Below the pieces are notes generated by a model that ran no database searches, was not told the origin of the DNA, and saw nothing but the letters and a program-made list of their open reading frames with translations. Below are positions 10,251 through 60,687 of a stretch of 64,000 nucleotides of DNA, piece by piece. Source of the stretch: Octopus sinensis. Its lineage: Eukaryota. Within the stretch, counting starts at the first letter, position 1, and each line of letters opens with the position of its first letter. The position numbers and the translations under genes were made by a program. The stretch spans positions 106,950,001-107,014,000 of the forward strand of contig NC_042999.1 in the NCBI RefSeq assembly GCF_006345805.1, given 5' to 3'.

Positions 10251-10271
10251 TCGTTTTTTTGTTTTTTTTAT

Positions 10272-10551: not shown

Positions 10552-10596
10552 ATATATTCCTCCGTCTTCCCTTCCTTGGATCTTTCCTTTTCCTAT

Positions 10597-27581: not shown

Positions 27582-27639
27582 GAACAATCAAAATCAAATC
27601 ATATATCAGAAAGCAGGGGTTAAGTAACACATCCGTTCG

Positions 27640-29695: not shown

Positions 29696-29728
<33 letters not shown>

Positions 29729-30199: not shown

Positions 30200-31026
30200 T
30201 AATCCCGTTTCTCTATTATCTTTATCTGTATCGCCATTGCCAACTTGGCTTCCTGTCTGTTTGTTTTCAGGCCTCCTCGTGTTATTCCATTCCAAATGAC
30301 TTCCTACAAGTACTATCTCGCCCCCTCTCATTTAAATTATGTTCTACTAATATTTCCAAAGTTTCTAGATGGTGTGTAATATTCCCTACGATTTATATTC
30401 ATTCTCGCTGCTCCTTCCAAAGTTCTAGATGGTGTGTAATATTCCCTACGAATTATATTTCAACCCCATATTTTAAGCGTTGGTCGTAAACCAAATCCCG
30501 TTTCTCTATTATCTTATCGCCATTGTCAGCATGGCTTCCTGTCCTCTCAATTCCTTCTTTGCTTTCAAGGCCACCCTGTTATTCCATCACCAGGATTCCT
30601 TACAAAGTACTATTCCCGCTACCTCTCACTTAAATTATGTTTTACTCCCCCCCCCAATCCCTAACTCCTTATAAACCAGTGTACGATTTTATTTCGTCCC
30701 ATTTCTCGAGCTACTTGATGGCAACACGGATCTCAGAAATATGACCAGATAAGCGTTCTTCACTTTTAACCTGCCATTCATATTCATATTTTTAAGCGTT
30801 GATCGTAAACCTAATCCCGTTTCTCTATTATCTTTATCTGTATCGCCATTGCCAACTAGGCTTCCTGTCTGTTTTGTTTTCAGGCCTCCTCGTGTTATTC
30901 CATTCCAACTGACTTCCTACAAGTACTATCTCGCCCCCTCTCATTTAAATTATGTTCTACTAATATTTCCAAAGTTTCTAGATGGTGTGTAATATTCCCT
31001 ACGATTTATATTCATTCTCGCTGCTC
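30200..31026. repeat. G-poor tandem repeat block directly upstream of RTE copy 2 (612-bp period with ~300-bp diverged subunits)
   Basis: 30200-30412 is nearly identical to 30812-31025; a diverged version starts at ~30495. Confidence 0.9.
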
Positions 31027-31056
31027 TTTCGAGGCGCCCGCCCTCCCACCCCTCCA

Positions 31057-31116
31057 CCAATAACCGGAAGTTTCTACCAATAACCGGAAGTTTCTACCAA
31101 TAACCGGAAGTTTCTA
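31057..31116 (+). promoter_or_regulatory. 3 x 20-bp repeat (ccaataaccggaagtttcta) carrying CCAAT and ETS-type CCGGAAGT motifs
   Basis: Direct inspection; CCGGAAGT also occurs at 49621-49628 in copy 3. Confidence 0.6.
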
Positions 31117-31324
31117 CCGCTGTCTTGACTCCCCCCCCCCGCGTATACATCCACGTCGGTTCTTTTTGATCATATGGAGCAAAAATGGTGAAACGTATGC
31201 AGCTGTATGGAAGTTTCTAACCCAGTCTTACTTACCACCCCACCCCCATCCCCATGTAGGGTTTATTTGATCATATAGCGCAAAAACTGTGAAATGTATG
31301 CAGGTTGAAGTCTAGTGTTTCAGT

Positions 31325-34300: not shown

Positions 34301-34447
34301 GGAACCCGTGGAAGAGGTAGACCCAGGAAAACCTGGGACGAGGTGGTGAAGCACGACCTTCGAACTTTAGGCCTCACTGAGGAAATGACCAGCGACCGAG
34401 ACCTTTGGAAATATTCTGTACGTGAGAAGACCAGGCAGGACAAGTGA
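31325..34447 (+). pseudogene. RTE single ORF (APE endonuclease, RT, PHD finger), 1041 codons with one nonsense codon (TAA, 33374-33376)
   Basis: LRVGTLNVGTL, CIQEVRW, AGDFNGH, SQIDYIL, QHRLVV; RT motifs. ORFs 31325..33376 and 33551..34447 are in the same frame. Confidence 0.95.
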
Positions 34448-36879
34448 GCCCAGCCCACTTATGAATGCCTTTCCTCCCTTGGACACAAAGACCAGTTGAG
34501 GCAAGCGAAGTCGATATAGAACCTCATCCGACGACAGGCACCCATGCCAACCCCCTTTGCTTGCGAAGACATGTTGGGGCAAGCGAAATCGAAATCGAAT
34601 TGAACCAGCCAGGATCCCTGGTCTGGTGGTACGTAAAAAGCACTATCCGACTCGTGGCCGATGCCAGCGCCTCCTCCACTGGCTTCCGTGCCGGTGGCAC
34701 ATAAAATACACCAATCTGACCGTACGACAGGCACCCATGCCAACCCCCTTGCTTGCGAAGACATGTTGGGGCAAGCGAAATCGAAATCGAATTGAACCAG
34801 CCAGGATCCCTGGTCTGGTGGTACGTAAAAAGCACTATCCGACTCGTGGCCGATGCCAGCACCGCCTCGTCTGGCTTCCGTGCCGGTGGCACATAAAATA
34901 CACCAATCCGACCGTGGCCGTTGCCAGCCTCGCCTGGCACCTGTGCAGGTGGCACGTAAAAAGCACCCACTACACTCACGGAATGGTTGGCGTTAGGAAG
35001 GGCATCCAGCTGTAGAAACACTGCCAGATAAGACTGGAGCCTGGTGCAGCCTTCTGGCTTCCCAGATCCCCGGTCGAACCGTCCAATCCATGCTAGCATG
35101 GAGAACGGACGTTAAACGATGATGATGATGATGATGAAATCCAATTAACATCAATAGTTTTTAACATGAAAAACTATCATCTGAGAAAATATGTTCTTTT
35201 ATGATATTGTATTTGTATTAGCTTTTGATGACAAAAAAGGATTCTAAGTTTTGTCATTTAGGTAGAATATAAAATCTTTTGTGAAAAATCACATCCATGA
35301 CTAAAACAAATGTATGGGATTTTGCTACATGTATTAAAAACAGGGAAGCAATGTAGAATACAATTTGCTGGATATTGTTTTAATTAGAGCAAAAATGAAC
35401 TGTGTCGTCATCTGATCTTTGAAGATAATGACCAGCTAGCCATTATCAAATGCATTCCAATCCAGATGTCATTACCAGAGATTCGGGATATAAAGTGTGA
35501 GACATTGGTAGAAAATTGCAGGACCGTGAATTCCCAAAATAAGTTGTTAGATATGTTTTGACAAAGACTGTCAAATGATGATGGCGATGATAATACACTC
35601 TTACAATCAACTGTTCAGAGAAGTCAAGTGATAAACTTGAACCAGAAAATTTTACAGGCATTATACAAAAGAACACCACCTATACCAGAACACCAACCTT
35701 TCTGAGATTAAGATTTGCTTGAAAGAGTTCAATTAATTTACCAACATTAACATGAAATAAGTCATTCAAACTGTGAAGCTGTGTGCAACAAGGTCAGAGA
35801 GCTTGTAAATTAAAAGAATTCATAGAATTTGGTGACGTAGAAGAAAATGAAATATTTCTCTCTTCTGTCATCAGTTGACATGTACAACATTACACCCCCA
35901 GTTACTGCACCCCATCTAGATATAGTTTTTGATTACCCTTATCTAAGATGAAATATATAAGCCTTCCTGGAAAACACGCTTAATCCACATCTTTCTTTCT
36001 CATCTTCAACATTAAATTAGCAGAATAATATTCATCAGGAAATGAACTAGCTAAAATTACCTGACTAACTATCACTCCACATAATGTAGTAAAGCACTCC
36101 AGATTCCAACAATTCTTCAAACAACATCTCTTTTGTCAAAGAACCATGCCAATACCTCTCTGCTGAGAAAATAATCAAAGAATCGATCTCAGTAGCTATA
36201 AAAATGCAAGATATTAGAAATCTGAGGAACTATTCCCTTTTGATTTGGTGATGGGAAGCAGTAATAAAATGCAAGTGATTTTATTAAAAGGATACATTAC
36301 ACAATAACTAAATCTAGCAATTGTGGAGCATTGTGGGATAGATATAGAAAATGAAAGAGAACTTTGTAAACATTAGTAGATGATTTAAAACATATTCAAA
36401 GTTAAACAGGTGACAACCTGGACATCCAGTTCGTTGGCAAAAGTTTAGAGATTTGTTTGAGAAAGATGTTGTAGTACCATAGAATCTATATGTGGGCCAG
36501 TATTGGAGTAAAGATGGTATGGTGAGATTTGAGGAAAATATGGTTGTTATTGCTAATATAAAGGCTTTAGCATTGGCTCATAAGTTTTGATTTTTAATAG
36601 AAGGGAAATAACCAAGTATTGGACTAGCAAGTCAAAGAAGTTGAGTTCAAGTCTATAGCTAATGTTTTTTATGTTTCCCATTTAATCATCATTGATTTTT
36701 AAAAATTTGTAGCTGTTAGATTCTGAAGATAGTATGTTAACCAAAGACAAACTGGAGAAATTTATCTTCCATTTCCATAACTCCATAAAATCATAATTAA
36801 TTCCCAGTATCTTATAGACGTAAAAAAGTGTTTACAGAAGAACGAGAGGATCATTGCTTTCGATGAGAAAAACGAAAGA

Positions 36880-37191
36880 GTGTATAAGTGTTGTAAATTT
36901 TCAAGATTTGTGTTGTATAGTAGGGCCACAGATGTGAAAGCAACCGCTCGCTTCGCGAAGGTAGAGGAGGACGAGTGGAAGGAGGAGGTTCTTCAGGAGC
37001 ATCTGAGGAACCGACTGATCAGAGACGTGACCAAAGAGGTAATGGAGGGCAAACTTGTAATAACCCCGGCAACCACACCCACCCAGAGCCCGGTGGCAAC
37101 GCCGGTCAAGAGCCCTGCAGCAGCAACTACAAGGGAGGAAGAAGGGGAAGCAGGCAGATTTAAACTGCCATGCTCCCTTTCCCAACCGTGA
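36880..37191 (+). CDS. Putative ORF1 C-terminal remnant of the Tx1 element
   Basis: Frame open from ~36781; charged helical region followed by a P/T/A-rich tail; stops 28 bp before ORF2; no zinc knuckle seen. Confidence 0.5.
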   Translation: MYKCCKFSRFVLYSRATDVKATARFAKVEEDEWKEEVLQEHLRNRLIRDVTKEVMEGKLVITPATTPTQSPVATPVKSPAAATTREEEGEAGRFKLPCSLSQP

Positions 37192-37219
37192 GTACATTTA
37201 TTTTTCTCTCTCACCTACA

Positions 37220-40200
37220 ATGGCTAAGCTGGGTTGTATAAATGTACGAGGAATGGGGTCGAAACGGAAACAAATTTGTTTCCTGAACGACCTCACGACA
37301 CATGGTGTAGATATAGCTATTGCAACCGAGTCCAAGATGAGCGAGACCCAAGCGTTCTCGCCTCTTCTAAATAGTTTCGAGAAATTTATTTCTCCTAGCC
37401 GAGGAGGAGGCAGAGGCGTGGCAGTCTTTATCAGGAAGAGCTTGGACTTGCAGGTAAGTACTGTCTTTCTGGACCCAGAAGGCAGGCTGGTTGTCCTGGA
37501 TGTGACTCACGTAAGTAAACAGTCCTTCAGGTTGGTAGCTGTCTACGCCCCGAACGAGGGTAGACAGACGGGTTTTTTTCGGAACCTGGAGCCCTTTTTA
37601 GCGACGTCGAAAACAGTAATCCTAGTAGGGGACTTTAACACTGTCCTTGAAGCGCAGATCGACAGTGTTGGCTCAACCAATAGGAAGGGGAACCCTAGCC
37701 TCAAGGGTCTACTAGAGAGCTTTGATCTAGTGGACCGTTACCGACTGGATGAGCCGAGCGTTCCACAGTGGACGTGGAGTAACAACGACGGCTCACACAG
37801 ATCGTATCTAGATAGGATATTTATTAAGAAAAGAGATAAGGATACGTTTAGTTGTCCACAATTTCATATTGTACCTTACTCGGATCACAAATTTGTGACG
37901 TGTAGGATGCAATTAGACAAGTGTCATAGACAGGGACCCGGGTACTGGAAGCTGAACAAGGCTATTTTGAATTGTGAAGACTTCCGTACCCGGATTAAGG
38001 TGTTAGTTCAGAGGGCATTGTGTGGCACCATCATTAACAATAGATGGTGGCACGCCCTCAAAAGAGCCATTCGTTCAGAGTCCGTTAGATTTAGCAATCA
38101 GCTAAGGATAGATAGGGCTAGTCTAGAGGGCGATTTAGTTAAGAATCTAGACGAGGCAATGGAAGCTGGCTCTGCATCCGGAGTGTTGGCGGCAAGGACG
38201 GTATTGTACCGTCACCTTAACTCCAAACACGAAGGTTGCAGAGTCAGAGCTAAGCTACGCGCTGGGAAACGAGAAGGTATTAACGTGGCCGGATGGGCCC
38301 GTCGTGTGGAGAGTCAGAGAGGCAACAGAGCCTCAATAAAATCTTTAACTGACGAACAGGGACAAAAGATCTATGGACAGGAGGAGATGCAAAAGTTTCT
38401 TCACCAGCATTTCGCCCGCGTGTTCGGGGGTGGTGGTTCGCTGGATCGGGGGAGAGCCTTAAAGGACTTCCTAGCCGGCGGACCGCGGCTCGCGGGGCGT
38501 GAGGTGGAGTGCTGTGAAGGAGCGATCACTCCCGCGGAGATAAAGGAGATACTGGCCGGATGCGACGGGGAGAAGTCGCCGGGGTTGGATGATCTGCCCT
38601 ACGAGTTTTACCAAAGTATGCCGGACTTGTTCGGGGGAATACTGGCGGGCGTCTACACGAACTGGCAGCAGAATGGGAGAATTCCCAGTTCTGTAAGCCG
38701 GGGAGTGGTGACGCTAATCCAGAAAGACCCGAGCAAGGGGGATAACATTAGTAACTACAGGCCCATAACTCTACTTAATGTAGAGTTAAAGATTTTGGCC
38801 AAGGTGTTGGCAAAAAGGTTGACGGTTGTCGTGGAGAAACTTGTAGGGAGAGCACAGACATGTGCAATTCCAGGCAGGTCGATCCAGGACAACCTTCACC
38901 TTATACGCTACACCTTAGATAGGGTGGGTAAATTAGCCGGCAAAGGCGGGGTAATGGTCCATTTAGACCAAAGTAAAGCCTTCGATAGGGTAGACCATGG
39001 GTACCTGGCGACGGTCCTCGAAGCGGCTGGGCTGGGCCCTGAATTTCGCGAGTGGATCTCCGCTATGTATAGCGGCATCAAGTCCACCGTCCAGATAAAC
39101 GGTTACCTAACGGAACCGTTTTCGATCGAGTGTTCAGTGCGTCAGGGGTGCCCCTTGTCACCACTTTTGTACGTATTGGCTCTTGAGCCATTGTTGCGAA
39201 AGTTGGAGAGGCTGGGGAGTAACTCGGATGAAATCGGAGGTGGGAGGACGGTTACTGCTTATGCGGATGACGTCACCCTCATCGTGTCCAAAGAGGCCCA
39301 ACTACCTTGTGTAGAGGAGGCTATCAGAGGATACGAGGCGGTGGCAGGAGCAAAGGTTAACAAGGACAAATCGGTTGGCTTGCGCCTCGGCACCTGGAGG
39401 AGCAAGTCGATATCGTCCAGTGTCGTGGGACACTGGACGGATGGCCCTGTTAAGTTGCTGGGAGTTTGGTTTGGGCCAGACTCCCAAACGGAGAAGAACT
39501 GGAGTGAGGTGACAAGCAAGGTGGAAGCCATAGTACGGACCTGGTCCGCAAGGTTTCTGTCCTTGAAAGGAAAGGCGGAGGTGGTGCAGATGTTCATTGC
39601 ATCTGTAATCACCTACCGCCTGACCGTTGTCCCTTGCCCCGATTCATGGCTTAACAAGTTGGAGCGAATCCTTTTCCGCTTTTTGTGGAAAGGAGGAAGG
39701 CCACTTGTGAGGCGCTCCGTTTGCTGCCAGGAACCGTTAAAGGGTGGGTTAGGAATGCCTTGGTTGATGATGCGCAGACATGCGTTGAGGCTAAGGCATC
39801 TCTGGCACCACCTGGAAGGTGATAAGGTGTGGAGTCCGCTGGCAGGGAGATTTTTCCCGAGACCGGCCTCCTTAGTGAATTTTAAACCCGGTTACATCAA
39901 AAGATGGAAACTGACTCCATGGCAAAAGGAGTGCCGACAGGCACTCACGCTGATCCACAAGGCGGGCAAGGCCGGCTGCGGAAATACCACCTCGGTATTT
40001 TATAGAGGGCTGGTAGAGGCAAAAAACGACGACGTCCTAGGCGGGGCTCTGGGGTTCGACGAAGACCAGCTTACCAACCTGTTTAAAAAAACTTTCAGGT
40101 CGGGGTATTTGGATAATTTCCAAAGATCCCTGGCCTGGCAGTGCTACAGGAATGCTTTACCTGTTCGCGAGAAGTTATCGCGGCACGGAGTTTCAGTGCC

Positions 40201-40608
40201 ACCGACGTGTCCAAGGTGCGAGTTGGACGATGAAACCGTCCAGCACGCTTTTGTTCACTGTCGGAAGTTGTCCGACTTGATAAGTTACGCAGAACACGTG
40301 TTATCGCATCTGGGACGAGTACAGCTGTCGGCTGAGTCTATGATTAGATGATACCGCCAACTGGACTCTCGAAGGAAGGTAAGGCATGTTTTCACTGCAC
40401 GGTTGCAGTAGTAAAAGAATGCATGTGGAGAACAAGAATGGAAGGAGCCGCGATAGGATCCTTTGTCTCCGGCCCCGGCTTGCTCACTTACTTCAGATAT
40501 CATCTGAAGAGCAAAATGGGGCTGGAAAAGAGGATCTTACCACGGGGTGTGTATGAGAAAAGATGGAAGGAAGTGGAAAAAAAGGTGGGTGTCAGAAGTC
40601 CAGCTTGA
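37220..40608 (+). CDS. Tx1/L1 ORF2 (APE endonuclease, RT, CCHC finger); 1043 aa open, C-terminal ~86 aa frameshifted at ~40348
   Basis: LGCINVRG, AVYAPN, LVGDFN, SYLDRIF, SDHKFV; DQSKAFDRVDH, VRQGCPLSPLL, AYADDV; CPRC-x8-H-x4-C; continuation IPPTGL...RW in ORF 40348..40608. Confidence 0.92.
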
Positions 40609-40856
40609 CCATGGAGGAAGGAGAGGAAATAAAAGCTGCGGGGCCTCATAAATTGCCGGGGTGTAAAAACTCCAGTGAGATTATAAGTTCATGTACTGTT
40701 GTTTGTTCTACTGGTCATGTAAAGGACATTTATGTTATAATGAATAATCCAAATGTAAATGAAAATTTTTAAACGAATCTCTTAAATGTTTTTTGTATAT
40801 ATGTCCTGTATTTGTCCTTCTGTGTAATCGATTTTTATAATCATAATAAAGAAATA

Positions 40857-43800
40857 CCCACTCGCTTCAAAATATCTAAAGAATACGCACAGATCATGAA
40901 TGGCTAAAAGTTAAGTGAATCGTCCAACCTCGCTACGACTACCTTCTTTCTTGCACTTATCCTTATTCTTTCTCTATTCTTCAATTTCCATCTCATTGTA
41001 TTGTCCCTCATTCTTTCAGTATTCCCTCATTACCCTGTCTAGCTCAAACATTTTTTTTTTTTTTTTTTTTCGTTTAGACTTGTCTCCAGATTCATAGCCA
41101 CTCTGATTTTTCAATTTTTCAATATTTCGTTTAGTATTGTCTCCCGATTCATACAAACCCATTTGCTAGCTCACGATCAACAGAACCTCTTTACTCAGCT
41201 ACGGTGTTATATTAGCTATCAATAATGATATTCCCTCTGATTTTTCTGATTTTCAAACCTATTTATCTAATGTTTATTTATCGACAATGCCGTCCCCAGT
41301 CAAATTCCCTCACACCGCTTATTGTCACGTGTCCCTTGACCTCTCTCTCTAACTAACCCTCGCATTTATCGTTAACCCCACTCGCTTCAAAATATCTAAA
41401 GAATACGCACAGATCATGAATGGCTAAAAGTTAAGTGAATCGTCCAACCTCGCTACGACTACCTTCTTTCTTGCACTTATCCTTATTCTTTCTCTATTCT
41501 TCAATTTCCATCTCATTGTATTGTCCCTCATTCTTTCAGTATTCCCTCATTACCCTGTCTAGCTCAAACATTTTTTTTTTCGTTTAGACTTGTCTCCAGG
41601 TTCATAGCCACTCTGATTTTTCAATTTTTCGTTTAGTATTGTCTCCCGATTCATACAAACCCATTTGCTAGCTCACGATTAACAGAACCTCTTTACTCAG
41701 CTACGGAGTTATATTAGCTATCAATAATGATATTCCCTCTGATTTTTCTGATTTTCAAACCTATTTATCTAATGTTTATTTATCGACAATGCCGTCCCCA
41801 GTCAAATTCCCTCACACTGCTTATTGTCACGTGTCCCTTGACCTCTCTCTCTAAATAACCCTCGCATTTATCGTTAACCCCACTCGCTTCAAAATATCTA
41901 AAGAATACGCACAGATCATGAATGGCTAAAAGTTAAGTGAATCGTCCAACCTCGCTACGACTACCTTCTTTCTTGCACTTATCCTTATTCTTTCTCTATT
42001 CTTCAATTTCCATACAAACCCATTTGCTAGCTCACGATCAACAGAACCTCTTTACTCAGCTACGGTGTTATATTAGCTATCAATAATGATATTCCCTCTG
42101 ATTTTTCTGATTTTCAAACCTATTTATCTAATGTTTATTTATCGACAATGCCGTCCCCAGTCAAATTCCCTCACACCGCTTATTGTCACGTGTCCCTTGA
42201 CCTCTCTCTCTAACTAACCCTCGCATTTATCGTTAACCCCACTCGCTTCAAAATATCTAAAGAATACGCACAGATCATGAATGGCTAAAAGTTAAGTGAA
42301 TCGTCCAACCTCGCTACGACTACCTTCTTTCTTGCACTTATCCTTATTCTTTCTCTATTCTTCAATTTCCATCTCATTGTATTGTCACTCATTCTTTCAG
42401 TATTCCCTCATTACCTGTCTAGCTCAAACATTTTTTTTTTCGTTTAGACTTGTCTCCAGGTTCATAGCCACTCTGATTTTTCAATTTTTCGTTTAGTATT
42501 GTCTCCCGATTCATACAAACCCATTTGCTAGCTCACGATCAACAGAACCTCTTTACTCAGCTACGGTGTTATATTAGCTATCAATAATGATATTCCCTCT
42601 GATTTTCTGATTTTCAAACCTATTTATCTAATGTTTATTTATCGACAATGCCGTCCCCAGTCAAATTCCCTCACACCGCTTATTGTCACGTGTCCCTTGA
42701 CCTCTCTCTCTAACTAACCCTCGCATTTATCGTTAACCCCACTCGCTTCAAAATATCTAAAGAATACGCACAGATCATGAATGGCTAAAAGTTAAGTGAA
42801 TCGTCCAACCTCGCTACGACTACCTTCTTTCTTGCACTTATCCTTATTCTTTCTCTATTCTTCAATTTCCATCTCATTGTATTGTCACTCATTCTTTCAG
42901 TATTCCCTCATTACCCTGTCTAGCTCAAACATTTTTTTTTTCGTTTAGACTTATCTCCAGGTTCATAGCCACTCTGATTTTTCAATTTTTCGTTTAGTAT
43001 TGTCTCCCGATTCATACAAACCCATTTGCTAGCTCACGATCAACAGAACCTCTTTACTCAGCTACGGTGTTATATTAGCTATCAATAATGATATTCCCTC
43101 TGATTTTTCTGATTTTCAAACCTATTTATCTAATGTTTATTTATCGACAATGCCGTCCCCAGTCAAATTCCCTCACACCGCTTATTGTCACGTGTCCCTT
43201 GACCTCTCTCTCTAACTAACCCTCGCATTTATCGTTAACCCCACTCGCTTCAAAATATCTAAAGAATACGCACAGATCATGAATGGCTAAAAGTTAAGTG
43301 AATCGTCCAACCTCGCTACGACTACCTTCTTTCTTGCACTTATCCTTATTCTTTCTCTATTCTTCAATTTCCATCTCATTGTATTGTCCCTCATTCTTTC
43401 AGTATTCCCTCTACCCTCATTACCCTGTCTAGCTCAAACATTTTTTTTTTCGTTTAGACTTGTCTCCAGGTTCATAGCCACTCTGATTTTTCAATTTTTC
43501 GTTTAGTATTGTCTCCCGATTCATACAAACCCATTTGCTAGCTCACGATCAACAGAACCTCTTTACTCAGCTACGGTGTTATATTAGCTATCAATAATGA
43601 TATTCCCTCTGATTTTTCTGATTTTCAAACCTATTTATCTAATGTTTATTTATCGACAATGCCGTCCCCAGTCAAATTCCCTCACACCGCTTATTGTCAC
43701 GTGTCCCTTGACCTCTCTCTCTAACTAACCCTCGCATTTATCGTTAACCCCACTCGCTTCAAAATATCTAAAGAATACGCACAGATCATGAATGGCTAAA

Positions 43801-46800
43801 AGTTAAGTGAATCGTCCAACCTCGCTACGACTACCTTCTTTCTTGCACTTATCCTTATTCTTTCTCTATTCTTCAATTTCCATCTCATTGTATTGTCCCT
43901 CATTCTTTCAGTATTCCTCATTACCCTGTCTAGCTCAAACATTTTTTTTTTCGTTGAGACTTGTCTCCAGGTTCATAGCCACTCTGATTTTTCAATTTTT
44001 CGTTTAGTATTGTCTCCCGATTCATACAAACCCATTTGCTAGCTCACGATCAACAGAACCTCTTTACTCAGCTACGGTGTTATATTAGCTATCAATAATG
44101 ATATTCCCTCTGATTTTTCTGATTTTCAAACCTATTTATCTAATGTTTATTTATCGACAATGCCGTCCCCAGTCAAATTCCCTTACACCGCTTATTGTCA
44201 CGTGTCCCTGACCTCTCTCTCTAACTAACCCTCGCATTTATCGTTAACCCCACTCGCTTCAAAATATCTAAAGAATACGCACAGATCATGAATGGCTAAA
44301 AGTTAAGTGAATCGTCCAACCTCGCTACGACTACCTTCTTTCTTGCACTTATCCTTATTCTTTCTCTATTCTTCAATTTCCATCTCATTGTATTGTCACT
44401 CATTCTTTCAGTATTCCCTCATTACCCTGTCATGCTCAAACATTTTTTTTTTCGTTTAGACTTGTCTCCAGGTTCATAGCCACTCTGATTTTTCAATTTT
44501 TCGTTTAGTATTGTCTCCCGATTCATACAACCCATTTGCTAGCTAGCTCACGATCAACAGAACCTCTTTACTCAGCTACGGTGTTATATTAGCTATCAAT
44601 AATGATATTCCCTCTGATTTTTCTGATTTTCAAACCTATTTATCTAATGTTTATTTATCGACAATGCCGTCCCCAGTCAAATTCCCTCACACCGCTTATT
44701 GTCACGTGTCCCTTGACCTCTCTCTCTAACTAACCCTCGCATTTATCGTTACCCCACTCGCTTCAAAATATCTAAAGAATACGCACAGATCATGAATGGC
44801 TAAAAGTTAAGTGAATCGTCCAACCTCGCTACGACTACCTTCTTTCTTGCACTTATCCTTATTCTTTCTCTATTCTTCAATTTCCATCTCATTGTATTGT
44901 CACTCATTCTTTCAGTATTCCCTCATTACCCTGTCTAGCTCAAACATTTTTTTTTTCGTTTAGACTTGTCTCCAGGTTCATAGCCACTCTGATTTTTCAA
45001 TTTTTCGTTTAGTATTGTCTCCCGATTCATACAACCCATTTGCTAGCTCACGATCACAGAACCTCTTTACTCAGCTACGGTGTTATATTAGCTATCAATA
45101 ATGATATTCCCTCTGATTTTTCTGATTTTCAAACCTATTTATCTAATGTTTATTTATCGACAATGCCGTCCCCAGTCAAATTCCCTCACACCGCTTATTG
45201 TCACGTGTCCCTTGACCTCTCTCTCTAACTAACCCTCGCATTTATCGTTAACCCCACTCGCTTCAAAATATCTAAAGAATACGCACAGATCATGAATGGC
45301 TAAAAGTTAAGTGAATCGTCCACCTCGCTACGACTACCTTCTTTCTTGCACTTATCCTTATTCTTTCTCTATTCTTCAATTTCCATCTCATTGTATTGTC
45401 ACTCTCATTCTTTCAGTATTCCCTCATTACCCTGTCTAGCTCAAACATTTTTTTTTTTTCGTTTAGACTTATCTCCAGGTTCATAGCCACTCTGATTTTT
45501 CAATTTTTCGTTTAGTATTGTCTCCCGATTCATACAAACCCATTTGCTAGCTCACGATCAACAGAACCTCTTTACTCAGCTACGGTGTTATATTAGCTAT
45601 CAATAATGATATTCCTCTGATTTTTCTGATTTTCAAACCTATTTATCTAATGTTTATTTATCGACAATGCCGTCCCCAGTCAAATTCCTCACACACCGCT
45701 TATTGTCACGTGTCCCTTGACCTCTCTCTCTAACTAACCCTCGCATTTATCGTTAACCCCACTCGCTTCAAAATATCTAAAGAATACGCACAGATCATGA
45801 ATGGCTAAAAGTTAAGTGAATCGTCCAACCTCGCTACGACTACTTCTTTCTTGCACTTATCCTTATTCTTTCTCTATTCTTCAATTTCCATCTCATTGTA
45901 TTGTCCCTCAGTCTTTCAGTATTCCCTCATTACCCGTCTAGCTCAAACATTTTTTTTTTCGTTTAGACTTGTCTCCAGGTTCATAGCCACTCTGATTTTT
46001 CAATTTTTCGTTTAGTATTGTCTCCCGATTCATACAAACCCATTTGCTAGCTCACGATCAACAGAACCTCTTTACTCAGCTACGGAGTTATATTAGCTAT
46101 CAATAATGATATTCCCTCTGATTTTTCTGATTTTCAAACCTATTTATCTAATGTTTATTTATCGACAATGCCGTCCCCAGTCAAATTCCCTCACACCGCT
46201 TATTGTCACGTGTCCCTTGACCTCTCTCTCTAACTAACCCTCGCATTTATCGTTAACCCCACTCGCTTCAAAATATCTAAAGAATACGCACAGATCATGA
46301 ATGGCTAAAAGTTAAGTGAATCGTCCAACCTCGCTACGACTACCTTCTTTCTTGCACTTATCCTTATTCTTTCTCTATTCTTCAATTTCCATCTCATTGT
46401 ATTGTCCCTCATTCTTTCAGTATTCCCTCATTACCCTGTCTAGCTCAAACTTTTTTTTTCGTTTAGACTTGTCTCCAGGTTCATAGCCACTCTGATTTTT
46501 CAATTTTTCGTTTAGTATTGTCTCCCGATTCATACAAACCCATTTGCTAGCTCACGATCAACAGAACCTCTTTACTCAGCTACGGTGTTATATTAGCTAT
46601 CAATAATGATATTCCCTCTGATTTTTCTGATTTTCAAACCTATTTATCTAAGGTTATTTATCGACAATGCCGTCCCCAGTCAAATTCCCTCACACCGCTT
46701 ATTGTCACGTGTCCCTTGACCTCTCTCTCTAACTAACCCTCGCATTTATCGTTAACCCCACTCGCTTCAAAATATCTAAAGAATACGCACAGATCATGAA

Positions 46801-49591
46801 TGGCTAAAAGTTAAGTGAATCGTCCAACCTCGCTACGACTACCTTCTTTCTTGCACTTATCCTTATTCTTTCTCTATTCTTCAATTTCCATCTCATTGTA
46901 TTGTCCCTCATTCTTTCAGTATTCCCTCATACCCTGTCTAGCTCAAACATTTTTTTTTCGTTTAGACTTGTCTCCAGGTTCATAGCCACTCTGATTTTTC
47001 AATTTTTCGTTTAGTATTGTCTCCCGATTCATACAAACCCATTTGCTAGCTCACGATCAACAGAACCTCTTTACTCAGCTACGGTGTTATATTAGCTATC
47101 AATAATGATATTCCCTCTGATTTTTCTGATTTTCAACCTATTTATCTAATGTTTATTTATCGACAATGCCGTCCCCAGTCAAATTCCCTTACACCGCTTA
47201 TTGTCACGTGTCCCTTGACCTCTCTCTCTAACTAACCCTCGCATTTATCGTTAACCCCACTCGCTTCAAAATATCTAAAGAATACGCACAGATCATGAAT
47301 GGCTAAAAGTTAAGTGAATCGTCCAACCTCGCTACGACTACCTTCTTTCTTGCACTTATCCTTATTCTTTCTCTATTCTTCAATTTCCATCTCATTGTAT
47401 TGTCCCTCATTCTTTCAGTATTCCCTCATTACCCTGTCTAGCTCAAACATTTTTTTTTCGTTTAGACTTGTCTCCAGGTTCATAGCCACTCTGATTTTTC
47501 AATTTTTCGTTTAGTATTGTCTCCCGATTCATACAAACCCATTTGCTAGCTCACGATCAACAGAACCTCTTTACTCAGCTACGGAGTTATATTAGCTATC
47601 AATAATGATATTCCCTCTGATTTTTCTGATTTTCAAACCTATTTATCTAATGTTTATTTATCGACAATGCCGTCCCCAGTCAAATCCCTCACACCGCTTA
47701 TTGTCACGTGTCCCTTGACCTCTCTCTCTAACTAACCCTCGCATTTATCGTTAACCCCACTCGCTTCAAAATATCTAAAGAATACGCACAGATCATGAAT
47801 GGCTAAAAGTTAAGTGAATCGTCCAACCTCGCTACGACTACCTTCTTTCTTGCACTTATCCTTATTCTTTCTCTATTCTTCAATTTCCATCTCATTGTAT
47901 TGTCCTCATTCTTTCAGTATTCCCTCATTACCCTGTCTAGCTCAAACATTTTTTTTTTCGTTTAGACTTGTCTCCAGGTTCATAGCCACTCTGATTTTTC
48001 AATTTTTCGTTTAGTATTGTCTCCCGATTCATACAAACCCATTTGCTAGCTCACGATCAACAGAACCTCTTTACTCAGCTACGGTGTTATATTAGCTATC
48101 AATAATGATATTCCCTCTGATTTTTCTGATTTTCAAACCTATTTATCTAATGTTTATTTATCGACAATGCCGTCCCCAGTCAAATTCCCTCACACCGCTT
48201 ATTGTCACGTGTCCCTTGACCTCTCTCTCTAACTAACCCTCGCATTATCGTTAACCCCACTCGCTTCAAAATATCTAAAGAATACGCACAGATCATGAAT
48301 GGCTAAAAGTTAAGTGAATCGTCAACCTCGCTACGACTACCTTCTTTCTTGCACTTATCCTTATTCTTTCTCTATTCTTCAATTTCCATCTCATTGTATT
48401 GTCCCTCATTCTTTCAGTATTCCCTCATTACCCTGTCTAGCTCAAACATTTTTTTTTTCGTTTAGACTTGTCTCCAGGTTCATAGCCACTCTGATTTTTC
48501 AATTTTCGTTTAGTATTGTCTCCCGATTCATACAAACCCATTTGCTAGCTCACGATCAACAGAACCTCTTACTCAGCTACGGTGTTATATTAGCTATCAA
48601 TAATGATATTCCCTCTGATTTTTCTGATTTTCAAACCTATTTATCTAATGTTTATTTATCGACAATGCCGTCCCCAGTCAAATTCCCTCACACCGCTTAT
48701 TGTCACGTGTCCCTTGACCTCTCTCTCTAACTAACCCTCGCATTTATCGTTAACCCCACTCGCTTCAAAATATCTAAAGAATACGCACAGATCATGAATG
48801 GCTAAAAGTTAAGTGAATCGTCCAACCTCCTACGCTACGATACCTTCTTTCTTGCACTTATCCTTATTCTTTCTCTATTCTTCAATTTCCATCTCATTGT
48901 ATTGTCCCTCATTCTTTCAGTATTCCCTCATTACCCTGTCTAGCTCAAACATTTTTTTTTCGTTTAGACTTGTCTCCAGGTTCATAGCCACTCTGATTTT
49001 TCAATTTTTCGTTTAGTATTGTCTCCCGATTCATACAAACCCATTTGCTAGCTCACGATCAACAGAACCTCTTTACTCAGCTACGGTGTTATATTAGCTA
49101 TCAATAATGATATTCCCTCTGATTTTTCTGATTTTCAAACCTATTTATCTAATGTTTATTTATCGACAATGCCGTCCCCAGTCAAATTCCCTTACACCGC
49201 TTATTGTCACGTGTCCCTTGACCTCTCTCTCTAACTAACCCTCGCATTTATCGTTAACCCCACTCGCTTCAAAATATCTAAAGAATACGCACAGATCATG
49301 AATGGCTAAAAGTTAAGTGAATCGTCCAACCTCGCTACGACTACCTTCTTTCTTGCACTTATCCTTATTCTTTCTCTATTCTTCAATTTCCATCTCATTG
49401 TATTGTCACTCATTCTTTCAGTATTCCCTCATTACCCTGTCATGCTCAAACATTTTTTTTTTTCGTTTAGACTTGTCTCCAGGTTCATAGCCACTCTGAT
49501 TTTTCAATGTTTCGTTTAGTATTGTCTCCCGATTCATACAAACCCATTTGCTAGCTCACGATCAACAGAACCTCTTTACTCAGCTACGGTG
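40857..49591. repeat. Tandem satellite array: ~500-bp unit, 17 units (one internally deleted) plus a partial 18th
   Basis: cccactcgcttc starts at ~40857, 41377, 41879, 42238, 42738, 43240, 43749, 44249, 44753, 45253, 45758, 46258, 46757, 47256, 47756, 48256, 48755 and 49259. Unit 3 lacks ~140 bp. Confidence 0.98.
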
Positions 49592-52500
49592 CACCCGCCC
49601 TCCCACCCCCACCACGCATGCCGGAAGTTCCTATTCTCTTCCATTCCGGGGTTGCTTCCCATGAAGACTGCAAATGCTCTCTCCATCCATACCCCTCCCT
49701 ACCCCTAGTCTCGACCTATGTAAGGTAATGTTCATACAGTGCAAAATATGAAAGGCTAGCGTTATGCAGGTTGTACTGAAGGCTACTTTACTACTTCATT
49801 TCTTGCACATGAATTCTGCCGAATGCGAGCTTTCTTTTCAGGTACACGAAGCTACTGTCCACCGTCCCAGGGTCTCTAGAGCCTATGCCTTCCACACCCT
49901 CAGGGTTGGCACCCTCAACGTTGGCACTCTGAAAGGTAGGTCTGGTGAGATAGTCGAGATGCTTGAACGGAGATGTGTGGATATATGTTGCATGCAAGAA
50001 ATAAGGTGGAGAGGAGGATCAGCTAGGTTCCTCACAGGCAAGGAACGCAGGTACAATATTTTCTGGGCAGGGAACACTGACGGGGGGTTGGTGGCGTGGG
50101 TATACTTATCGCTGAGAAATGGGTGGTAGATAAAGTAATGAGGTAATCAGAGTAAGTGACAGAATACTTAAGATTAGATTAGTGCTTCATCATAGTTTAG
50201 CAACCGTTATATCAGCTATGCTCCTCAGTCGGGGCTACCCGATGGACAGAAAGACCGATTCTATGACACTCTACTGCAGACTACCTCATCGACGAACGAC
50301 AGAGACCTTATCTTTGTGGCTGGTGACTTCAATGGTCACGTTGGACAACATGCTGGGGGCTTCCATGGCGTACATGGAGGCTATGGCTATGGCTCCCGCA
50401 ACGAGGAGGGAACCAGGCTGCTGGAGTTCTGCGATGCAAATAATCTTATGATTTGCAACACTAACTTCAGGAAACCTACCAGCCACCTAGTCACTTACCA
50501 ATCGGGCCAACATACCAGCCAAATTGACTACATCCTTACAAGGCAAAGGGAGAGATGGCTGCTTATAAATGCCAAAACCTTCCCAGGTGAAGAATGTACC
50601 CCACAACATAGACTGGTAGTTAGTAACTTTAGGATCAGGACTAGGAGGACAACCAGAAGACGACAAATATGGAGAAGAAGGATCTGGAAGCTTAAAGATC
50701 CTGCAAATGGACAGAGATTTAGGGACATATTACTTGAAGCCTCTGGCGAAGTAGAAGGGGATAGAGCATCACAGGGGGTAGAAGACAGCTGGACGTTTCT
50801 AAGGGACAACCTGCTGAGAGCCACTGACCAGATCTGTGGCTGGTGCAAAGTCCCCTCTCGACCTAGAATAACGTGGTGGTGGAACAATATTGTAGACAGG
50901 GCTATTAGAGAAAAGAGACAGGCTTGGAAGGTCTGGAAAAATGGGGGTAGCAGGGAATTGTATCAGACTGCCAAAAGAGAAGCTAGGAGACAGGTTTATT
51001 TAGCCAGAGGGGAAGCAGATAAGAAAAATTTGCCAATGTTCTGCGCCGTGAGGACCAAAGACTGGAGGTGTTTCGTGTTGCAAGACAGTGTGTGAGAGAG
51101 AATCGTGATGTGGTAGGAGAGAAGTGTGTTTGCATGGAAGATGGTTCACTTGCGCTAAATGAGGATGCGAAGAGAGAGGTTTGGAGATGCCACTATGAAA
51201 GGTTGCTGAATGAAGAAAATGAATGGGATAAAGAGAGTCTGCCGAATGTTGACCCAACAGAGGGACCAGCTATCCGAGTTGATAGTTCTGTGGTAGCTAA
51301 GGCAATTAGAAGCATGAAGACAGGGAAAGCCCCAGGCCCATCAGGAATCACTGCAGAGATGCTCAAAATGTCTGGTAGTGTCGGCTATAGCCTAGTCACC
51401 CATCTAGTTAATCAGGTGATACACAAAGGGGTCATACCCAATGACTGGTGTAGCAGTATAATAGTCAACTGCTACAAAGGTAAAGGTGATGACCTAGATA
51501 CAAATAACTACAGAGGTATCAAGCTGTTGGACCAGGTGATGAAGGTTACGGAGAAGGTCATAGCCCAACTAATTAGAGAGAGAGTTAGTTTAGATGAGAT
51601 GCAGTTTGGGTTTGTGCCAGGGAAAAGTACTACTGATGCTATATTCCTGGTAAGGCAGCTGCAGGAGAAATACCTAGCCAAAGATAAGCCCCTGTACCTG
51701 GCTTTTGTTGACATGGAGAAAGCCTTCGACAGGGTCCCCCGATCCCTTATCTGGTGGGCAATGAGAAAACTAGGGATAGATGAATGGTTAGTGAGAGCTG
51801 TGCGGGCCATGTATAGGGACGCCGCTAGTAGGGTGAGGGTTGGAAATGAGTACAGTGAAGAATTCCGGGTAGAGGTAGGGGTCCACCAAGGCTCAGTACT
51901 CAGCCCCCTCCTATTTATCATAGTCCTCCAGGCAATAACGGAGGAATTCAAGACAGGATGCCCTTGGGAGCTCCTCTATGCTGATGACCTTGCTCTAATT
52001 GCTGAGTCGCTATCAGAACTGGAGGAGAAGTTTCAGGTGTGGAAACAAGGATTAGAATCGAAGGGCCTCAGAGTCAATCTAGCTAAAACCAAAGTCGTAA
52101 TCAGTAGGAAGGTAGACAAATCACAAACACCTTCAGGTAGATGGCCCTGCTCGATCTATAGAAAAGGTGTAGGTAGAAACTCTATAAGATGCACCAAGTG
52201 TAAGCTATGGACACATAAGAGATGCAGCAATGTCAAAGGAAGGCTAACTACGAAGATGGTTTTTGTATGTGGCAGATGCTCAGGAACAATAAACACTGAA
52301 AATGCTCTGAGACCAACTTCCGTCACTTTCCAGGGAGAAAAACTAGAAATAGTTGATAGTTTCCGTTACCTAGGTGACCAAGTCAGCAGCGGGGGCGGGT
52401 GTGCTGAAAGTGTAACTGCTAGAGTAAGAATAGCTTGGGCAAAGTTCAGAGAGCTCTTACCTCTGCTGGTGACAAAAGGCCTCTCGCACAGAGTGAAAGG

Positions 52501-53556
52501 CAGACTGTATGATGCGTGTGTACGAACAGCCATGCTACATGGCAGTGAAACATGGGCCGTGACTGCTGGGGATATGCGTAAGCTCGCTAGAAATGAAGCC
52601 AGTATGCTCCGATGGATGTGTAATGCCGGTACTCACACTCGGCAGAGTGTAAGTACCTTGAGAGAAAAGCTGGACCTAAGAAGCATCAGTTGTGGTGTGC
52701 AAGAGAGACGTTTGCGCTGGTATGGTCATGTGGCGAGAATGGATGAAGATAGTTGTGTGAAAAAGTGCCACACCCTAGCGGTTGAGGGAACCTGTGGAAG
52801 AGGCAGACCCAGGAAAACCTGGAACGAGGTGGTGAAGCACGACCTTCGAACTTTAGGTCTCACTGAGGAAATGACTAGAGACCGAGACCTCTGGAAGTGT
52901 GCTGTGCGCGAGAAGACCCGGCAGGACAAGTGAGTCCACAACCCGTGGCCTTCTACATGGGATGGAGCCAGCCTACGTATGCATACCTTCCCTTCTTGGG
53001 ACACAAAACTCTACTTGTGAAGACGTGTTGAGGCAAGTGAGGATCAGAATCGAAATCGATCAATGGAAATTGCGGATGTGCTACCAGTGCCGGTGGCATG
53101 TCGAAACTCTGCTTGTGAAGACCTATTGAGGCAAGTGAGGATCAGAATCGAAATCGATCAATGGAAATCGATCAATGGAAATCGATCAATGGAAATTGCA
53201 GATGTGTTACCAGTGCCGGTGGCATGTAAGAGAACTTTCTGTTTCGCGACCGTTGCCAGCACCGCCCCGTTTCGTGTCCGTTGCCAGCCTCGCCTGGCCC
53301 TCGTGCCGGTGGCACATAAAAAGCACCATCCGTTCGTGGCCGTTTGCCAGCTCTGTCTGGCACCAGTGCGGGTGGCACGTAAAAAGCACCCACTACACTC
53401 ACGGAGTGGTTGGCGTTAGGAAGGGCATCCAGCCGTAGAAACACTGCCAGATTTGACTGGGCCTGATGAAGCCTTCTGGCTTCACAGACCCCAGTAGAAC
53501 CGTCCAACCCATGCTAGCATGGAAAACGGACGCTAAATGATGATGATGATGATGAT
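49592..53556 (+). mobile_element. RTE-clade LINE copy 3, apparently full length
   Basis: Same 5' motif as copy 2; 3' UTR with a ~98-bp duplication (53006/53104) and 3 x 14-bp gaaatcgatcaatg; (GAT)n tail. Confidence 0.95.
49764..52933 (+). pseudogene. RTE ORF with frameshifts in the endonuclease half; C-terminal 621 aa open
   Basis: ORFs 49764..50129, 50316..51095 and 51068..52933 are collinear with copy 2; the second PHD cysteine is mutated (CSIY). Confidence 0.93.
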
Positions 53557-55140
53557 TCAATCTGGCTGGTAGGATGTTAAAGCTATTCTAAAAGAGCTGT
53601 CAGAAGTGAATGTTATTGAGAATAATGCAATGTTTTGATTTTACAAATTTCACCCCAAAAGAAAAAGAGTGATTCACAACAGTAAGTTGTCCCCTAAATA
53701 GAGAGGAGTCAGAAACTTATTTCCAAGAGATCAGGATTTTTTTTTTTTTTGTTAGTGGGATTTCAAAACTTAGGAGTTAAATTTTATATTCTAGCTTCAA
53801 ACACAAAATCCTTCTGCAGTTCAATAAGTTCTGTTATTTATAAAGCAATACCCAAAACAAAAGCTGTAAATACAGAGCATTTGTTATTAGTACCATCAAT
53901 CAGGAAATGATTAACAAGAAATTCGAAGCATGTTAGCTTCTTTAGTTTCTCAAGCCTGCTTTCAATATCATCATAAAGGGTTTTACCCCCGCATTTCCAC
54001 TCTATACTGTAAAAGAAAGAGATAACACATAATCCTAGTATTATGTTAGATATCACACACAGTAGCTTTGATAACTGCATAAAGCTTATGAGCCACAGTT
54101 TGGCCACTCAACCTGCAAGAAATACCAGCCAAATTCCCTTCAAACTTCACTCTACCATCTTAAAAAATAGAAAGGACTCACTGGACAATTGTGATTAAGT
54201 CCTTTTATATGTTGGAATAGTTACAGCTAGAATGTTTTTGATTACAGGCCTCTTGAATTAAGGATAGCCTAGGGTTAAACAACAACAATGTACTTTATAA
54301 TGGTTGCCAGAGTAATCTATAAGATATTTATATTTGATTTTATATCCCATTTAGCTATTCCATTAGCTACTAAGATACTTAACAATATAGGCTTAATGAT
54401 TCTTCATAACTACAGAAATCTTTGTCTGTGGATTTTCAATTGATATGTCATGTACATTTCCAAAACCTCTTAAGCTAGATATCTGTATTGTTAGTATGGT
54501 TAATCAGTAAATATAACTCATCATAATTAGTACCTTCAAATCAATTATGAATCTTCTGTGAATAACTATGTCTCCACTGCTAATGAACAATACATAACTC
54601 AATGTCTAACACTCCTTACAAATGCAACCTCCCACAGTTTATGACAACTTCTTCGAGATGCCCTAACATCACTTTCATAATTATGTCTGCATCTCAAAAG
54701 CCCAACCCATTTTACAGTAAAGGCCACAGAACAAAAACCATAAATATATGTTTCATGTCACAGTTCTCTTCAATCTCAGATTAATTATTACATTTATGTT
54801 CTATGAGATTAAAATTAAAACCTTAGTTGTCAATAATATACATATGTAAATATGAATTTTCAAATTAGATTGGTAAGGATATACAATCCTAGTGGGTACC
54901 GTATTCACATTTACCAGTTAATAATGCTGGCTAAACTGTGTGAGTGTAGAAAAACTCTAGTTTGTTATTTCACTATCCTCAGTACTTAGTAGATCTTCAC
55001 ATCGGTAAATCCATATGTTTCTTTAGAGACTGCATGTTGTTCATAGAGAAGAAATATATTATTATTAATATCATTATTATTATTATTATTATCATTATTA
55101 TTATTATTATTATTATTATATTATTATTATTATTATTATT

Positions 55141-56900: not shown

Positions 56901-57278
56901 CAACCACATGGTTCCAGGTTCAGTCCCACTGTGTGGTACCTTGGGCAAGTGTCTTCTACTATAGCCTCGGGCCAACCAAAGCCTTGTGAGTGGATTTGGT
57001 AGATGGAAACTGAAAGAAGACCATCATATAAATGTATATATATATATATATATATGTGTTTGTGTGTGTGTGTGTGTGTGTTTGTGCCCCCAAATTTGCT
57101 TGACAACTGATGCTGGTGTGTTTACGTCCCCGTTACTTAGCAGTTCAGCAAAAGAGCTTGATAGAATAAGTACTAGGCTTACAAAGAATAAGTCCTAGAG
57201 TTGATTTGCTTGATTAAAGGTCAGTTCTCCAGCATGACCACAGTCAAATGACTGAAACAACTAGAAGAGTAAAAGAGA
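56901..57278 (+). mobile_element. tRNA-derived CORE-like SINE (head partly missing)
   Basis: catggttccaggttcagtccc...ttgggcaagtgtcttc...gactgaaacaa. Confidence 0.85.
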
Positions 57279-57319
57279 TGCCTTATTATATATATATATA
57301 TATATATATATATCATATG

Positions 57320-57390
<71 letters not shown>

Positions 57391-57467
57391 ATATATACAC
57401 ATACATATATATATATATGTACACATATATATACACATACATACATACATATATATACTCTTTTTCT

Positions 57468-57861
57468 TTTTACTCTTTTTACTTGTTTCAGTCATTTGAC
57501 TGCGGCCATGCTGGAGCACCGCCTTTAGTCGAGCAAATCGACCCCGGGACTTATTCTTTGTAAGCCCAGTACTTATTCTATCGGTCTCTTTTGCCGAACC
57601 GCTAAGTGACGGGGAGGTAAACACACCAGCATCGGTTGTCAAGCAATGCTAGGGGAACAAACATATTCACACACACTTATATATATATACATATATACGA
57701 CAGGCTTCTTTCAGTTTCCGTCTACCAAATCCACTCACAAGGCATTGGTCGGCCCGGGGCTATAGCAGAAGACACTTGCCCAAGATGCCACGCAGTGGGA
57801 CTGAACCCGGAACCATGTGGTTGGTTAGCAAGCTACTTACCAAACAGCCACTCCTGCGCCT
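57468..57861 (-). mobile_element. tRNA-derived CORE-like SINE, well preserved
   Basis: Minus strand aggcgcaggagtggctgtttggtaagtagc...gttccgggttcagtccc...ttgggcaagtgtcttc. Confidence 0.9.
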
Positions 57862-59817: not shown

Positions 59818-59859
<42 letters not shown>

Positions 59860-60687
59860 TAACATCTGTTTTCCATGTTGACATGGGTTGGACAGTTTGA
59901 CCAGAGCTGGTTAGGCTAGGGGCTGCACCAGGTTCCCTTGTCTGTCCTAGCCTGGTTTCTATAGCTGCAAGCCCTTCTTAACGTCAACCACTTCATAGAG
60001 TGTACTGGGTGCTTTTAACATGACACCAGCACCAGTGTTTTTCACTTGGCACCAGCACTGGTATCAATTTTGCTGCGATGGGTGAGTCAAGAGTGCATTC
60101 TTTTCAGGTTCTATCTACCAAATCTACTCACAAAGATTAGGTTGGCCCAAGGTTATAGTAGAAGATACTTTCCCAGTATACCATGCAATGGAACTGAACC
60201 TAGAACCATGTAGATGGGGAGCAAACTTCTTACCATACAGCCAAGCTAAAAAATTTTTAGTTCTTAAGCTAGTGTTAACATAGTTAACCTATTAACATTC
60301 AGATTATTCTGTCAAATATAATGTTTATTTATCTACATTGTTTTGAATGCATTAGGCATTACCTTGTAGATTTGAGACTGATTGTTTATTTTTAGAATGA
60401 CATTCAAGAATAGGTATAAGGGGCCTGATCTGACCAGTTTAAATATAAACCAGGTGGAATATTTGAGCTGGATTTTGCCAGTTTAAATGCTGAAGAGTAA
60501 AATGTATGGAGACATTAAAAGTTTAACTTGAATAATTGTTGGTGAAGAAAAAATATTAGTTAATGATTGACATTATTTTGAATCATTTTGGCATGTACGA
60601 GAGCGTTGGATTGGAAGTACCATGGATAAAAAACACACCAATGATGTATACAAGGTGTTGACTTAGCAGGACCGGTACCAAGCCAGG

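Follow-up and report, generated by a model that had tools for sequence, protein, structure and literature searches.

A 500-bp tandem array joined in sense to the 5′ end of an octopus RTE element: a possible monomeric leader module

Repeated promoter units at the 5′ ends of long interspersed nuclear elements (LINEs) are known essentially from mammalian L1. In mouse L1, the 5′ untranslated region (UTR) consists of promoter monomers and a tether, with 3–4 monomers on average and more than 10 at rare loci, and unrelated 5′ UTRs have been acquired repeatedly (PMC9022269). Repeats internal to retrotransposons are also a source of satellites: two plant reports describe UTR repeats of Ogre long terminal repeat (LTR) elements in Lathyrus (PMC7004042) and maize centromeric retrotransposon-derived repeats that occur as satellites (PMC3648361). 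In octopuses, RTE elements are the LINEs reported to be transcribed in the brain (PMC9115989), and L1-Tx1 families were reported to be active in O. vulgaris (PMC13282606). Here we analysed a stretch of 64,000 nucleotides from Octopus sinensis (NC_042999.1, positions 106,950,001–107,014,000 of the forward strand; called the window below), which as a whole was animal DNA rich in AT and microsatellites, and in which an 8.7-kb array of a 500-bp unit lay directly upstream of an RTE element. Our favoured reading, to which we give a probability of roughly 0.6, takes the 500-bp unit for the monomer, or upstream leader module, of an RTE subfamily, represented here by the copy RTE-C, and the array for the product of its head-to-tail amplification at this locus.

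The array and its junction with RTE-C

The locus comprised the following features (window coordinates):

36741–40856, + strand: L1/Tx1-like LINE, 5′-truncated (Pfam Exo_endo_phos, RVT_1 and zf-RVT)
40857–49591, + strand: tandem array of the 500-bp unit, ~17.4 copies (Tandem Repeats Finder and BLAST of the unit against the window)
49592–53556, + strand: RTE-C, full-length RTE LINE (Pfam endonuclease and RVT_1, shared 5′ motif, tail)

Tandem Repeats Finder called a period of 500 bp repeated 15.1 times at 42011–49591, plus a 359-bp variant. When one unit was compared by BLAST with the window, the unit at 41652–42010 was seen to carry a 139-bp deletion, and no copy was found anywhere in the 64 kb outside 40857–49591. 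The first base of the array corresponded to unit position 228 and the last base to unit position 57. The units were ~99% alike, with 0–5 substitutions per 500 bp in all of them but m08, which had nine, all in one clustered stretch. The remaining differences were mainly homopolymer-length indels, and some variants were common to non-adjacent units (e.g. m07 and m17).

Base composition of the sense strand was A.24, C.27, G.11 and T.38, with a GC skew of −0.43, and the observed/expected (o/e) ratio of CpG was 1.09, against 0.2–0.28 in the non-repeat background of the window. Each 500-bp unit contained one CACGTG and an internal 49-bp sub-duplication, in which TTTCGTTTAG and TTGTCTCC each occurred twice, spaced 49 bp; an E-box was located ~50 bp upstream of unit position 228. 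The array was non-coding, with a single open reading frame (ORF) of at least 70 aa across 8.7 kb. No similarity was detected between the unit and the 3′ UTR or upstream flank of the Tx1-like LINE, the RTE leaders or the downstream flank of RTE-C, and exact-pattern scans for the unit gave 0 matches in metagenome, viral and prokaryote-genome contigs. A first-pass annotation of this DNA had described an ~8.7-kb array sandwiched between two LINEs and built of near-identical, CpG-retaining, strand-asymmetric units with CACGTG and internal sub-duplications. The repeat call and BLAST reproduced the former, and unit alignment, composition and motif counts the latter; its array end of 49628 had to be moved to 49591, the overshoot of 37 nt lying in RTE-C.

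At its right-hand edge the array ended with ...CTACGGTG (unit position 57), followed immediately by CACCCGCCCTCCCACCCC, a 5′ motif in common with RTE-B, a second full-length RTE copy of the window; across the 49591/49592 junction the sequence read ...CTACGGTG / CACCCGCCC. For the 5′ motif CCCGCCCTCCCACCCC of RTE-B and RTE-C, two occurrences were counted in the window where 0.08 would be expected. The array was attached in sense orientation to RTE 5′ sequence. A non-repeated leader of 217 nt (49592–49808) preceded the RTE-C start codon at 49809. The RTE-C ORF was broken by ~4 frame-shifting indels, its CpG o/e was 0.5, and its 3′ UTR contained 14-bp and 63-bp repeats followed by a (GAT)n tail.

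The rest of the interrupted unit was absent after the RTE-C tail, as judged by BLAST and flank comparison. The array abutted the RTE-C 5′ end in sense and did not resume after the tail, indicating that this was not an insertion into a satellite. Both observations, the stop in mid-unit at the RTE 5′ motif and the missing remainder, had been made in the first-pass annotation and were found to be correct. Simple insertion of an RTE into an array was excluded for both full-length RTEs.

Tandem modules at other RTE 5′ ends

Two further RTE copies and one tandem block were located upstream in the window:

31036–35137, + strand: RTE-B, full-length RTE with one in-frame stop (Pfam, alignments)
30200–31035, + strand: block B, tandem repeat of ~306 bp, 2.7 copies, directly 5′ of RTE-B
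26100–29078, + strand: RTE-A, 5′-truncated RTE copy with no upstream array (Pfam, alignments)

RTE-B and RTE-C contained the Pfam domains Exo_endo_phos (plus Exo_endo_phos_2) and RVT_1 and were 88% identical in alignment. The RTE-B ORF of ~1040 codons was continuous save for one stop. A single ORF with an N-terminal apurinic/apyrimidinic-type endonuclease and then a reverse transcriptase, and a 3′ end of short tandem repeats, (GAT)n in all three copies, are characters of the RTE clade. Relatives of the family were RTE-like proteins annotated as “craniofacial development protein 2-like”. A PHD-type zinc finger was seen C-terminal to the reverse transcriptase in this lineage (33551–34447; 26409–27581; relatives P0001–P0005) and was common to many RTE relatives on marine and soil metagenome contigs.

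Block B had nearly the composition of the array (G.12, T.38, CpG o/e 0.92), and the earlier statement that the second full-length RTE has a G-poor tandem block at its 5′ end held true for 30200–31035. It was followed by an RTE-B leader of 289 nt, in which a 20-bp repeat (ACCAATAACCGGAAGTTTCT, 3.2 copies, with an ETS-like core CCGGAAGT) occupied 31056–31118 and a duplication of ~101 bp (two copies) occupied 31151–31303. RTE-B and RTE-C also shared a segment containing CCGGAAGT. The motif (C/T)GGAAGTT was present as a single copy each in RTE-C and in an Octopus bimaculoides RTE copy.

An annotated O. bimaculoides protein (P0152) was 82% identical to the N-terminus of RTE-B (partial) and had the same start. 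Its locus on chromosome CM046602.1 (L088) matched the window in transposon sequences only, indicating a different locus and not an ortholog, and its RTE body was nearer to RTE-B than to RTE-C. The L088 RTE aligned to RTE-C from window position 49587 on, i.e. from CGGT(G/A)CACCC. When the ~350 bp upstream of it were compared with the unit, a gapped local score of 67 was obtained; 300 dinucleotide shuffles had a mean of 33 (standard deviation 4.2) and none reached 67. Natural sequences scored at most 58 in 180 windows of 1 kb and at most 54 in 164 windows of 400 bp, and L088 ranked first in both comparisons. A 34-nt block (ACTC.GATTTTTCAAT...) scored 34 when scoring was strict, the control maximum being 35 in 778 windows.

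The unit-like blocks of L088 were collinear with the unit up to the junction CGGT(G/A)CACCC. The stretch 9450–9797 of L088 (G.115, T.39, CpG o/e 1.16) matched the array and block B in composition, whereas the sequence just upstream had G.24 and CpG o/e 0.2. It was this collinearity, the position beside an RTE and the composition, not the single blocks, that made the case for L088, and by this sequence comparison a second octopus species appears to have unit-like sequence with the same junction at a locus of its own. The L088 module seemed to begin near unit position 256–310, and block B was weakly similar to it, at a score reached by 1 of 164 controls. Module and leader of L088 together measured ~550 nt, close to the ~600-nt 5′ UTR reported for an octopus RTE transcript (PMC9115989), although that transcript may come from another RTE family.

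A scan for 350-bp windows of G-poor, CpG-retaining composition showed such stretches to be rare: the window had four of these regions and L088 had two. Of the six, three immediately preceded the 5′ ends of the three octopus RTE copies examined. The other two in the window were 2926–3350 (− strand), CpG-rich and possibly a promoter or the end of another element, and 57251–57650, overlapping a TA repeat.

The L088 junction bears on two other explanations of the array. A one-off event is rather improbable, whether the reverse transcriptase, on reaching the RTE RNA 5′ end, jumped to a satellite RNA or some other RNA and made a chimeric retrocopy, or a unique spacer between the LINEs was amplified de novo. 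LINE reverse transcriptases perform end-to-end template jumping and yield chimeras of the U6-L1 type, which gives such an event precedent; RTE-B and RTE-C share the 5′ motif yet have unrelated upstream arrays, and imperfect microhomology (CGGTG vs CGAGG) was seen at the array/RTE-C junction. But the junction and upstream sequence were common to L088, indicating that they were inherited and not made at this locus, and amplification of a spacer should leave non-periodic edges, whereas the 500-bp periodicity ran base-to-base between the LINEs. A template jump could still be how an ancestral element originally gained its module.

Mis-assembly, with the array length or one junction being a mis-join or collapse in the long-read assembly, is the least probable of the explanations considered. 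Tandem arrays as a class are prone to it, and the inter-unit differences were mostly homopolymer-length indels, typical of long-read errors. Against this, the units carried distinct markers (the 139-bp deletion and patterned shared substitutions), the right-hand junction was matched in an independent assembly of another species, and assemblers rarely create junctions exactly at element termini. Mis-assembly is unlikely for the right-hand junction, but may affect the array length.

A 67%-identical RTE relative was found on contig L001, which came from the same fragmentary NCBI assembly as a 59%-identical protein, the closest database relative of the Tx1-like LINE. An array with a 276-bp period (1–845, CpG o/e 1.75) began at the end of the contig and stopped 185 nt short of the ORF. 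This array was G-rich, whereas block B and the L088 stretch were G-poor like the 500-bp array; it had no similarity to the 500-bp unit, and no significant homology was found between the L001 leader and the leaders of the window. A called ORF of 232 aa (291–989), basic, repetitive and with a weak Pfam HC2 match, spanned the 276-bp array; it may encode a genuine ORF1-like product or be a chance outcome of the repeat. The same layout, monomers, then a non-repeated tether, then the ORF, all in one orientation, was found for the 500-bp array (217 nt), block B (289 nt) and L001 (185-nt leader). Other RTE 5′ ends of this lineage carry tandem modules that are not CpG-depleted. One motif, not significant alone, was noticed upstream of the RTE ORF in the copies of all three species:

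CTC(T/A)(G/A)ATTTTTCAA: unit positions 459–475 (e.g. 49490–49506); L088 9655–9671; L001 1004–1017

Among 58 wider RTE relatives on metagenome contigs, 17 had direct repeats in the 5′ region, mostly spaced 28–100 bp, against 0 of 58 ORF-internal controls, indicating that tandem 5′ duplication is a recurrent habit of the RTE clade. There was no support for large 5′ arrays being general in the wider clade, only the short duplications being enriched; the large modules appear to be specific to the cephalopod lineage.

These comparisons also bear on the possibility that a satellite independent of RTE pre-existed, that RTE-C inserted in or beside it with loss of the downstream array, and that the Tx1-like LINE did likewise on the other side. 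We consider this unlikely. Both boundaries of the array were in mid-unit, as for insertions into an array, and the units were much more alike than the decay of RTE-C predicts. L1 insertion sites can suffer large deletions, which would remove the downstream array. However, two independent insertion-plus-deletion events would be needed, erasing all traces of the outer array, and neither the unit-like sequence at the same junction in the non-orthologous O. bimaculoides locus nor the same arrangement at RTE-B and L001 would be explained. The earlier proposal that such arrays are tied to RTEs was upheld in part: the absence of resumption after the tail, the L088 junction, the composition and L001 together argue that the array belongs with the RTE and not with Tx1 or an independent satellite.

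The 3′ UTRs of the RTE copies were tandemly repeated as well (61–63-bp units, 192 bp × 2 and 14 bp × 3.6, at 27630–28904, 34531–34915 and 53146–53390), and in RTE-A the 61-bp unit had grown to 21 copies (1.3 kb, GC ~0.6). With the 5′ arrays, this growth indicated that both ends of the RTE family are prone to expansion. Older RTE fragments or short elements at 15623–16295 (− strand), 17448–17612, 29672–29910 (− strand) and 59841–60032 shared the last 165–200 nt of the RTE 3′ end, including GGAAGGGCATCCAGC, and are likely to be 5′-truncated copies or riders resembling short interspersed nuclear elements; GGAAGGGCATCCAGC was also seen upstream of an RTE relative in L083. Elsewhere in the window, LTR retrotransposon pol fragments were observed at 6647–10604 (− strand; aspartyl protease, reverse transcriptase, RNase H-like domain and DUF7047).

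Origin of the array and order of events

Under our favoured reading, the RTE-C copy would have brought along one unit or a few, their start lying near unit position 228, and unequal exchange would then have expanded the module to ~17 units. Unequal exchange accounts for the ~99% identity of the units and for the variants shared by non-adjacent ones; sharing of the kind seen between m07 and m17 points to exchange in situ rather than one rolling-circle burst. Local expansion after insertion is as compatible with the near-identity of the units as are the alternatives. The module may be part of the RTE transcript, acting as promoter or leader, and may resemble a CpG island, the genome around it being strongly depleted of CpG.

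RTE and R2 elements can bear HDV-like (hepatitis delta virus-like) ribozymes at their 5′ ends, which would account for an RTE 5′ terminus that stays fixed whatever lies upstream; none was matched here. A ribozyme-defined 5′ end or rolling-circle origin (HDV-like or hammerhead) had no Rfam support: the whole window, array included, gave no match at gathering thresholds, and no ribozyme family was detected at E values up to 10 in the last 1.4 array units plus the RTE-C leader or in block B plus the RTE-B leader, although Rfam may miss divergent HDV-like folds. By inspection, the G-poor leader of RTE-B had no complementary segments for a double-pseudoknot fold.

The first-pass annotation had also called the upstream modules “exchangeable”. 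In favour of this, two unrelated module types were found at RTE-B and RTE-C, but these were the only two cases. We therefore offer just tentatively, as a guess that could well be wrong, the wider view that octopus RTE subfamilies have interchangeable, CpG-island-like monomer promoters, which are joined at a fixed breakpoint, borne on the RNA and grow into multi-kb satellites at some sites. If it were true, RTE retrotransposition would routinely give rise to new satellites, and to unmethylated promoter arrays scattered across cephalopod genomes.

On the left of the array, the Tx1-like LINE comprised a C-terminal remnant of ORF1, an intact ORF2 (37220–40351, 1043 aa) and a 3′ UTR of 505 nt, ending with AATAAAGAAATA at 40856, its candidate 3′ end, directly after which the first-pass annotation had the array begin. 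Its 5′ limit lay between 36741 and ~36920, the frame being open from ~36781 and a GC step occurring at ~36920. Exact look-up of the ORF2 protein gave no record, and no second copy of the LINE or of its 3′ UTR was found in the 64-kb window. The Tx1-like label was assigned from domain content alone (APE, RT and zf-RVT).

The array could instead belong to this LINE, by 3′ transduction from a source copy next to a satellite, as a repeated 3′ UTR or as a site-specific target, which we hold to be very improbable. Tx1-clade elements are typically site-specific, and Tx1L targets the 400-bp PTR-1 tandem repeats of Tx1D in Xenopus; this site specificity and residence in a tandem repeat would suit the locus. 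An AATAAA was located 6 nt before the 40856/40857 junction, at which the array began with no poly(A), and LINE 3′ UTR repeats do expand in the window (21 copies in RTE-A). Against these points, unit sequence was found neither before the Tx1-like copy nor past the end of RTE-C, so that the repeat target was not on both sides, as it is in the Tx1L/PTR-1 and R1/R2 type. Transduction, an alternative raised in the first-pass annotation, was not borne out either: poly(A) or a tail and a target-site duplication (TSD) mark LINE 3′ transduction, whereas 49591 lacked poly(A) and Tx1 and array together had no TSD around them. Moreover, the unit was dissimilar to the Tx1 3′ UTR and resembled the RTE-upstream sequence of L088, in which window-wide BLAST gave no Tx1 match. 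The Tx1-like LINE is probably a mere neighbour of the array.

No convincing TSD was found under eight insertion models, nor for the 5′-truncated RTE-A alone, in agreement with the earlier remark that none could decide between the origins. Since even RTE-A had none, TSDs were uninformative for this RTE family here. A 10/11 match, TAG(T/G)ATGTTAA, was observed at 36730–36740, before the likely Tx1 5′ limit, and at 53570–53580, 13 nt past the RTE-C tail; the 13 nt between that tail and the second match (53557–53569) were TCAATCTGGCTGG. By a rough estimate, ~0.3 such matches are expected by chance. If this sequence were the TSD of Tx1, array and RTE-C as one insertion inside the Tx1 3′ end would fit.

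Two orders of events may thus be considered. Either an older Tx1-like LINE received array and RTE-C in its 3′ end, or the Tx1-like LINE inserted later at the edge of the array. The later insertion of Tx1 may be favoured, as RTE-C looked more decayed than the Tx1-like LINE; in that case, any array sequence that lay left of that LINE must have been lost.

Several results weigh against the 500-bp unit being an RTE leader module amplified in place. No TSD bracketed array plus RTE-C. RTE-C appeared older than the near-identical units, and the adjoining Tx1 ORF2 was intact. One copy outside the window, L088, linked the unit to an RTE; its similarity was diverged and heavily gapped, its module was not a clean tandem array, and its blocks, taken singly, stood only modestly above natural matches of low complexity and did not surpass the best of them. 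The exchange of modules was based on two cases, and block B had no detectable homology to the 500-bp unit (z 0.5). No large 5′ array was found beside four RTE relatives on long-read contigs, nor in most of the 58 short contigs of distant RTE relatives.

Comparison with known systems

Neither a monomeric LINE 5′ end nor a mobile-element-derived satellite was described for the RTE clade or for this phylum in the literature searched. If the reading of the 500-bp unit as an RTE monomer is true, the same architecture as in mammalian L1 would have had a convergent origin in distant LINE lineages, and there would be a concrete route from the leader of a mobile element to a satellite array. RTE regulation in the octopus brain would become testable through a CpG-retaining driver of variable copy number. 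Genome annotation would be affected too, as arrays of this type would otherwise be recorded as anonymous satellites, with the full-length RTE consensus cut short at CACCC.

The Tx1-like side of the locus resembled Tx1L in PTR-1 and other site-specific Tx1-clade LINEs, an L1/Tx1-like LINE being joined to a repeat of ~400–500 bp and poly(A) being absent where the two meet. It differed in that those elements have their target on both sides and a short TSD, whereas the unit was found here only 3′ of the LINE.

The RTE side resembled the mouse L1 system (A, Tf and Gf monomers; also rat, horse, elephant and opossum L1) in its head-to-tail repeats 5′ of the element body, in sense and with a tether before the ORF. 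As in mouse L1, the outermost unit was truncated, the copy number was variable, the modules were CpG-rich, and related bodies had unrelated 5′ modules. Unlike mouse L1, the element is an RTE-clade LINE (single ORF, PHD finger and microsatellite tail) of a cephalopod, the units were 300–500 bp vs ~200 bp, and the sense strand was strongly G-poor. The octopus locus had 17 units over 8.7 kb, one other copy was seen with the module, and a promoter role here is putative.

The present locus is like the Ogre and maize cases in that a short repeat of a mobile element would have expanded into a satellite-like array attached to or near the element. Those were plant LTR elements with mostly 3′ UTR repeats, whereas here it would be the 5′ leader of an animal non-LTR RTE.

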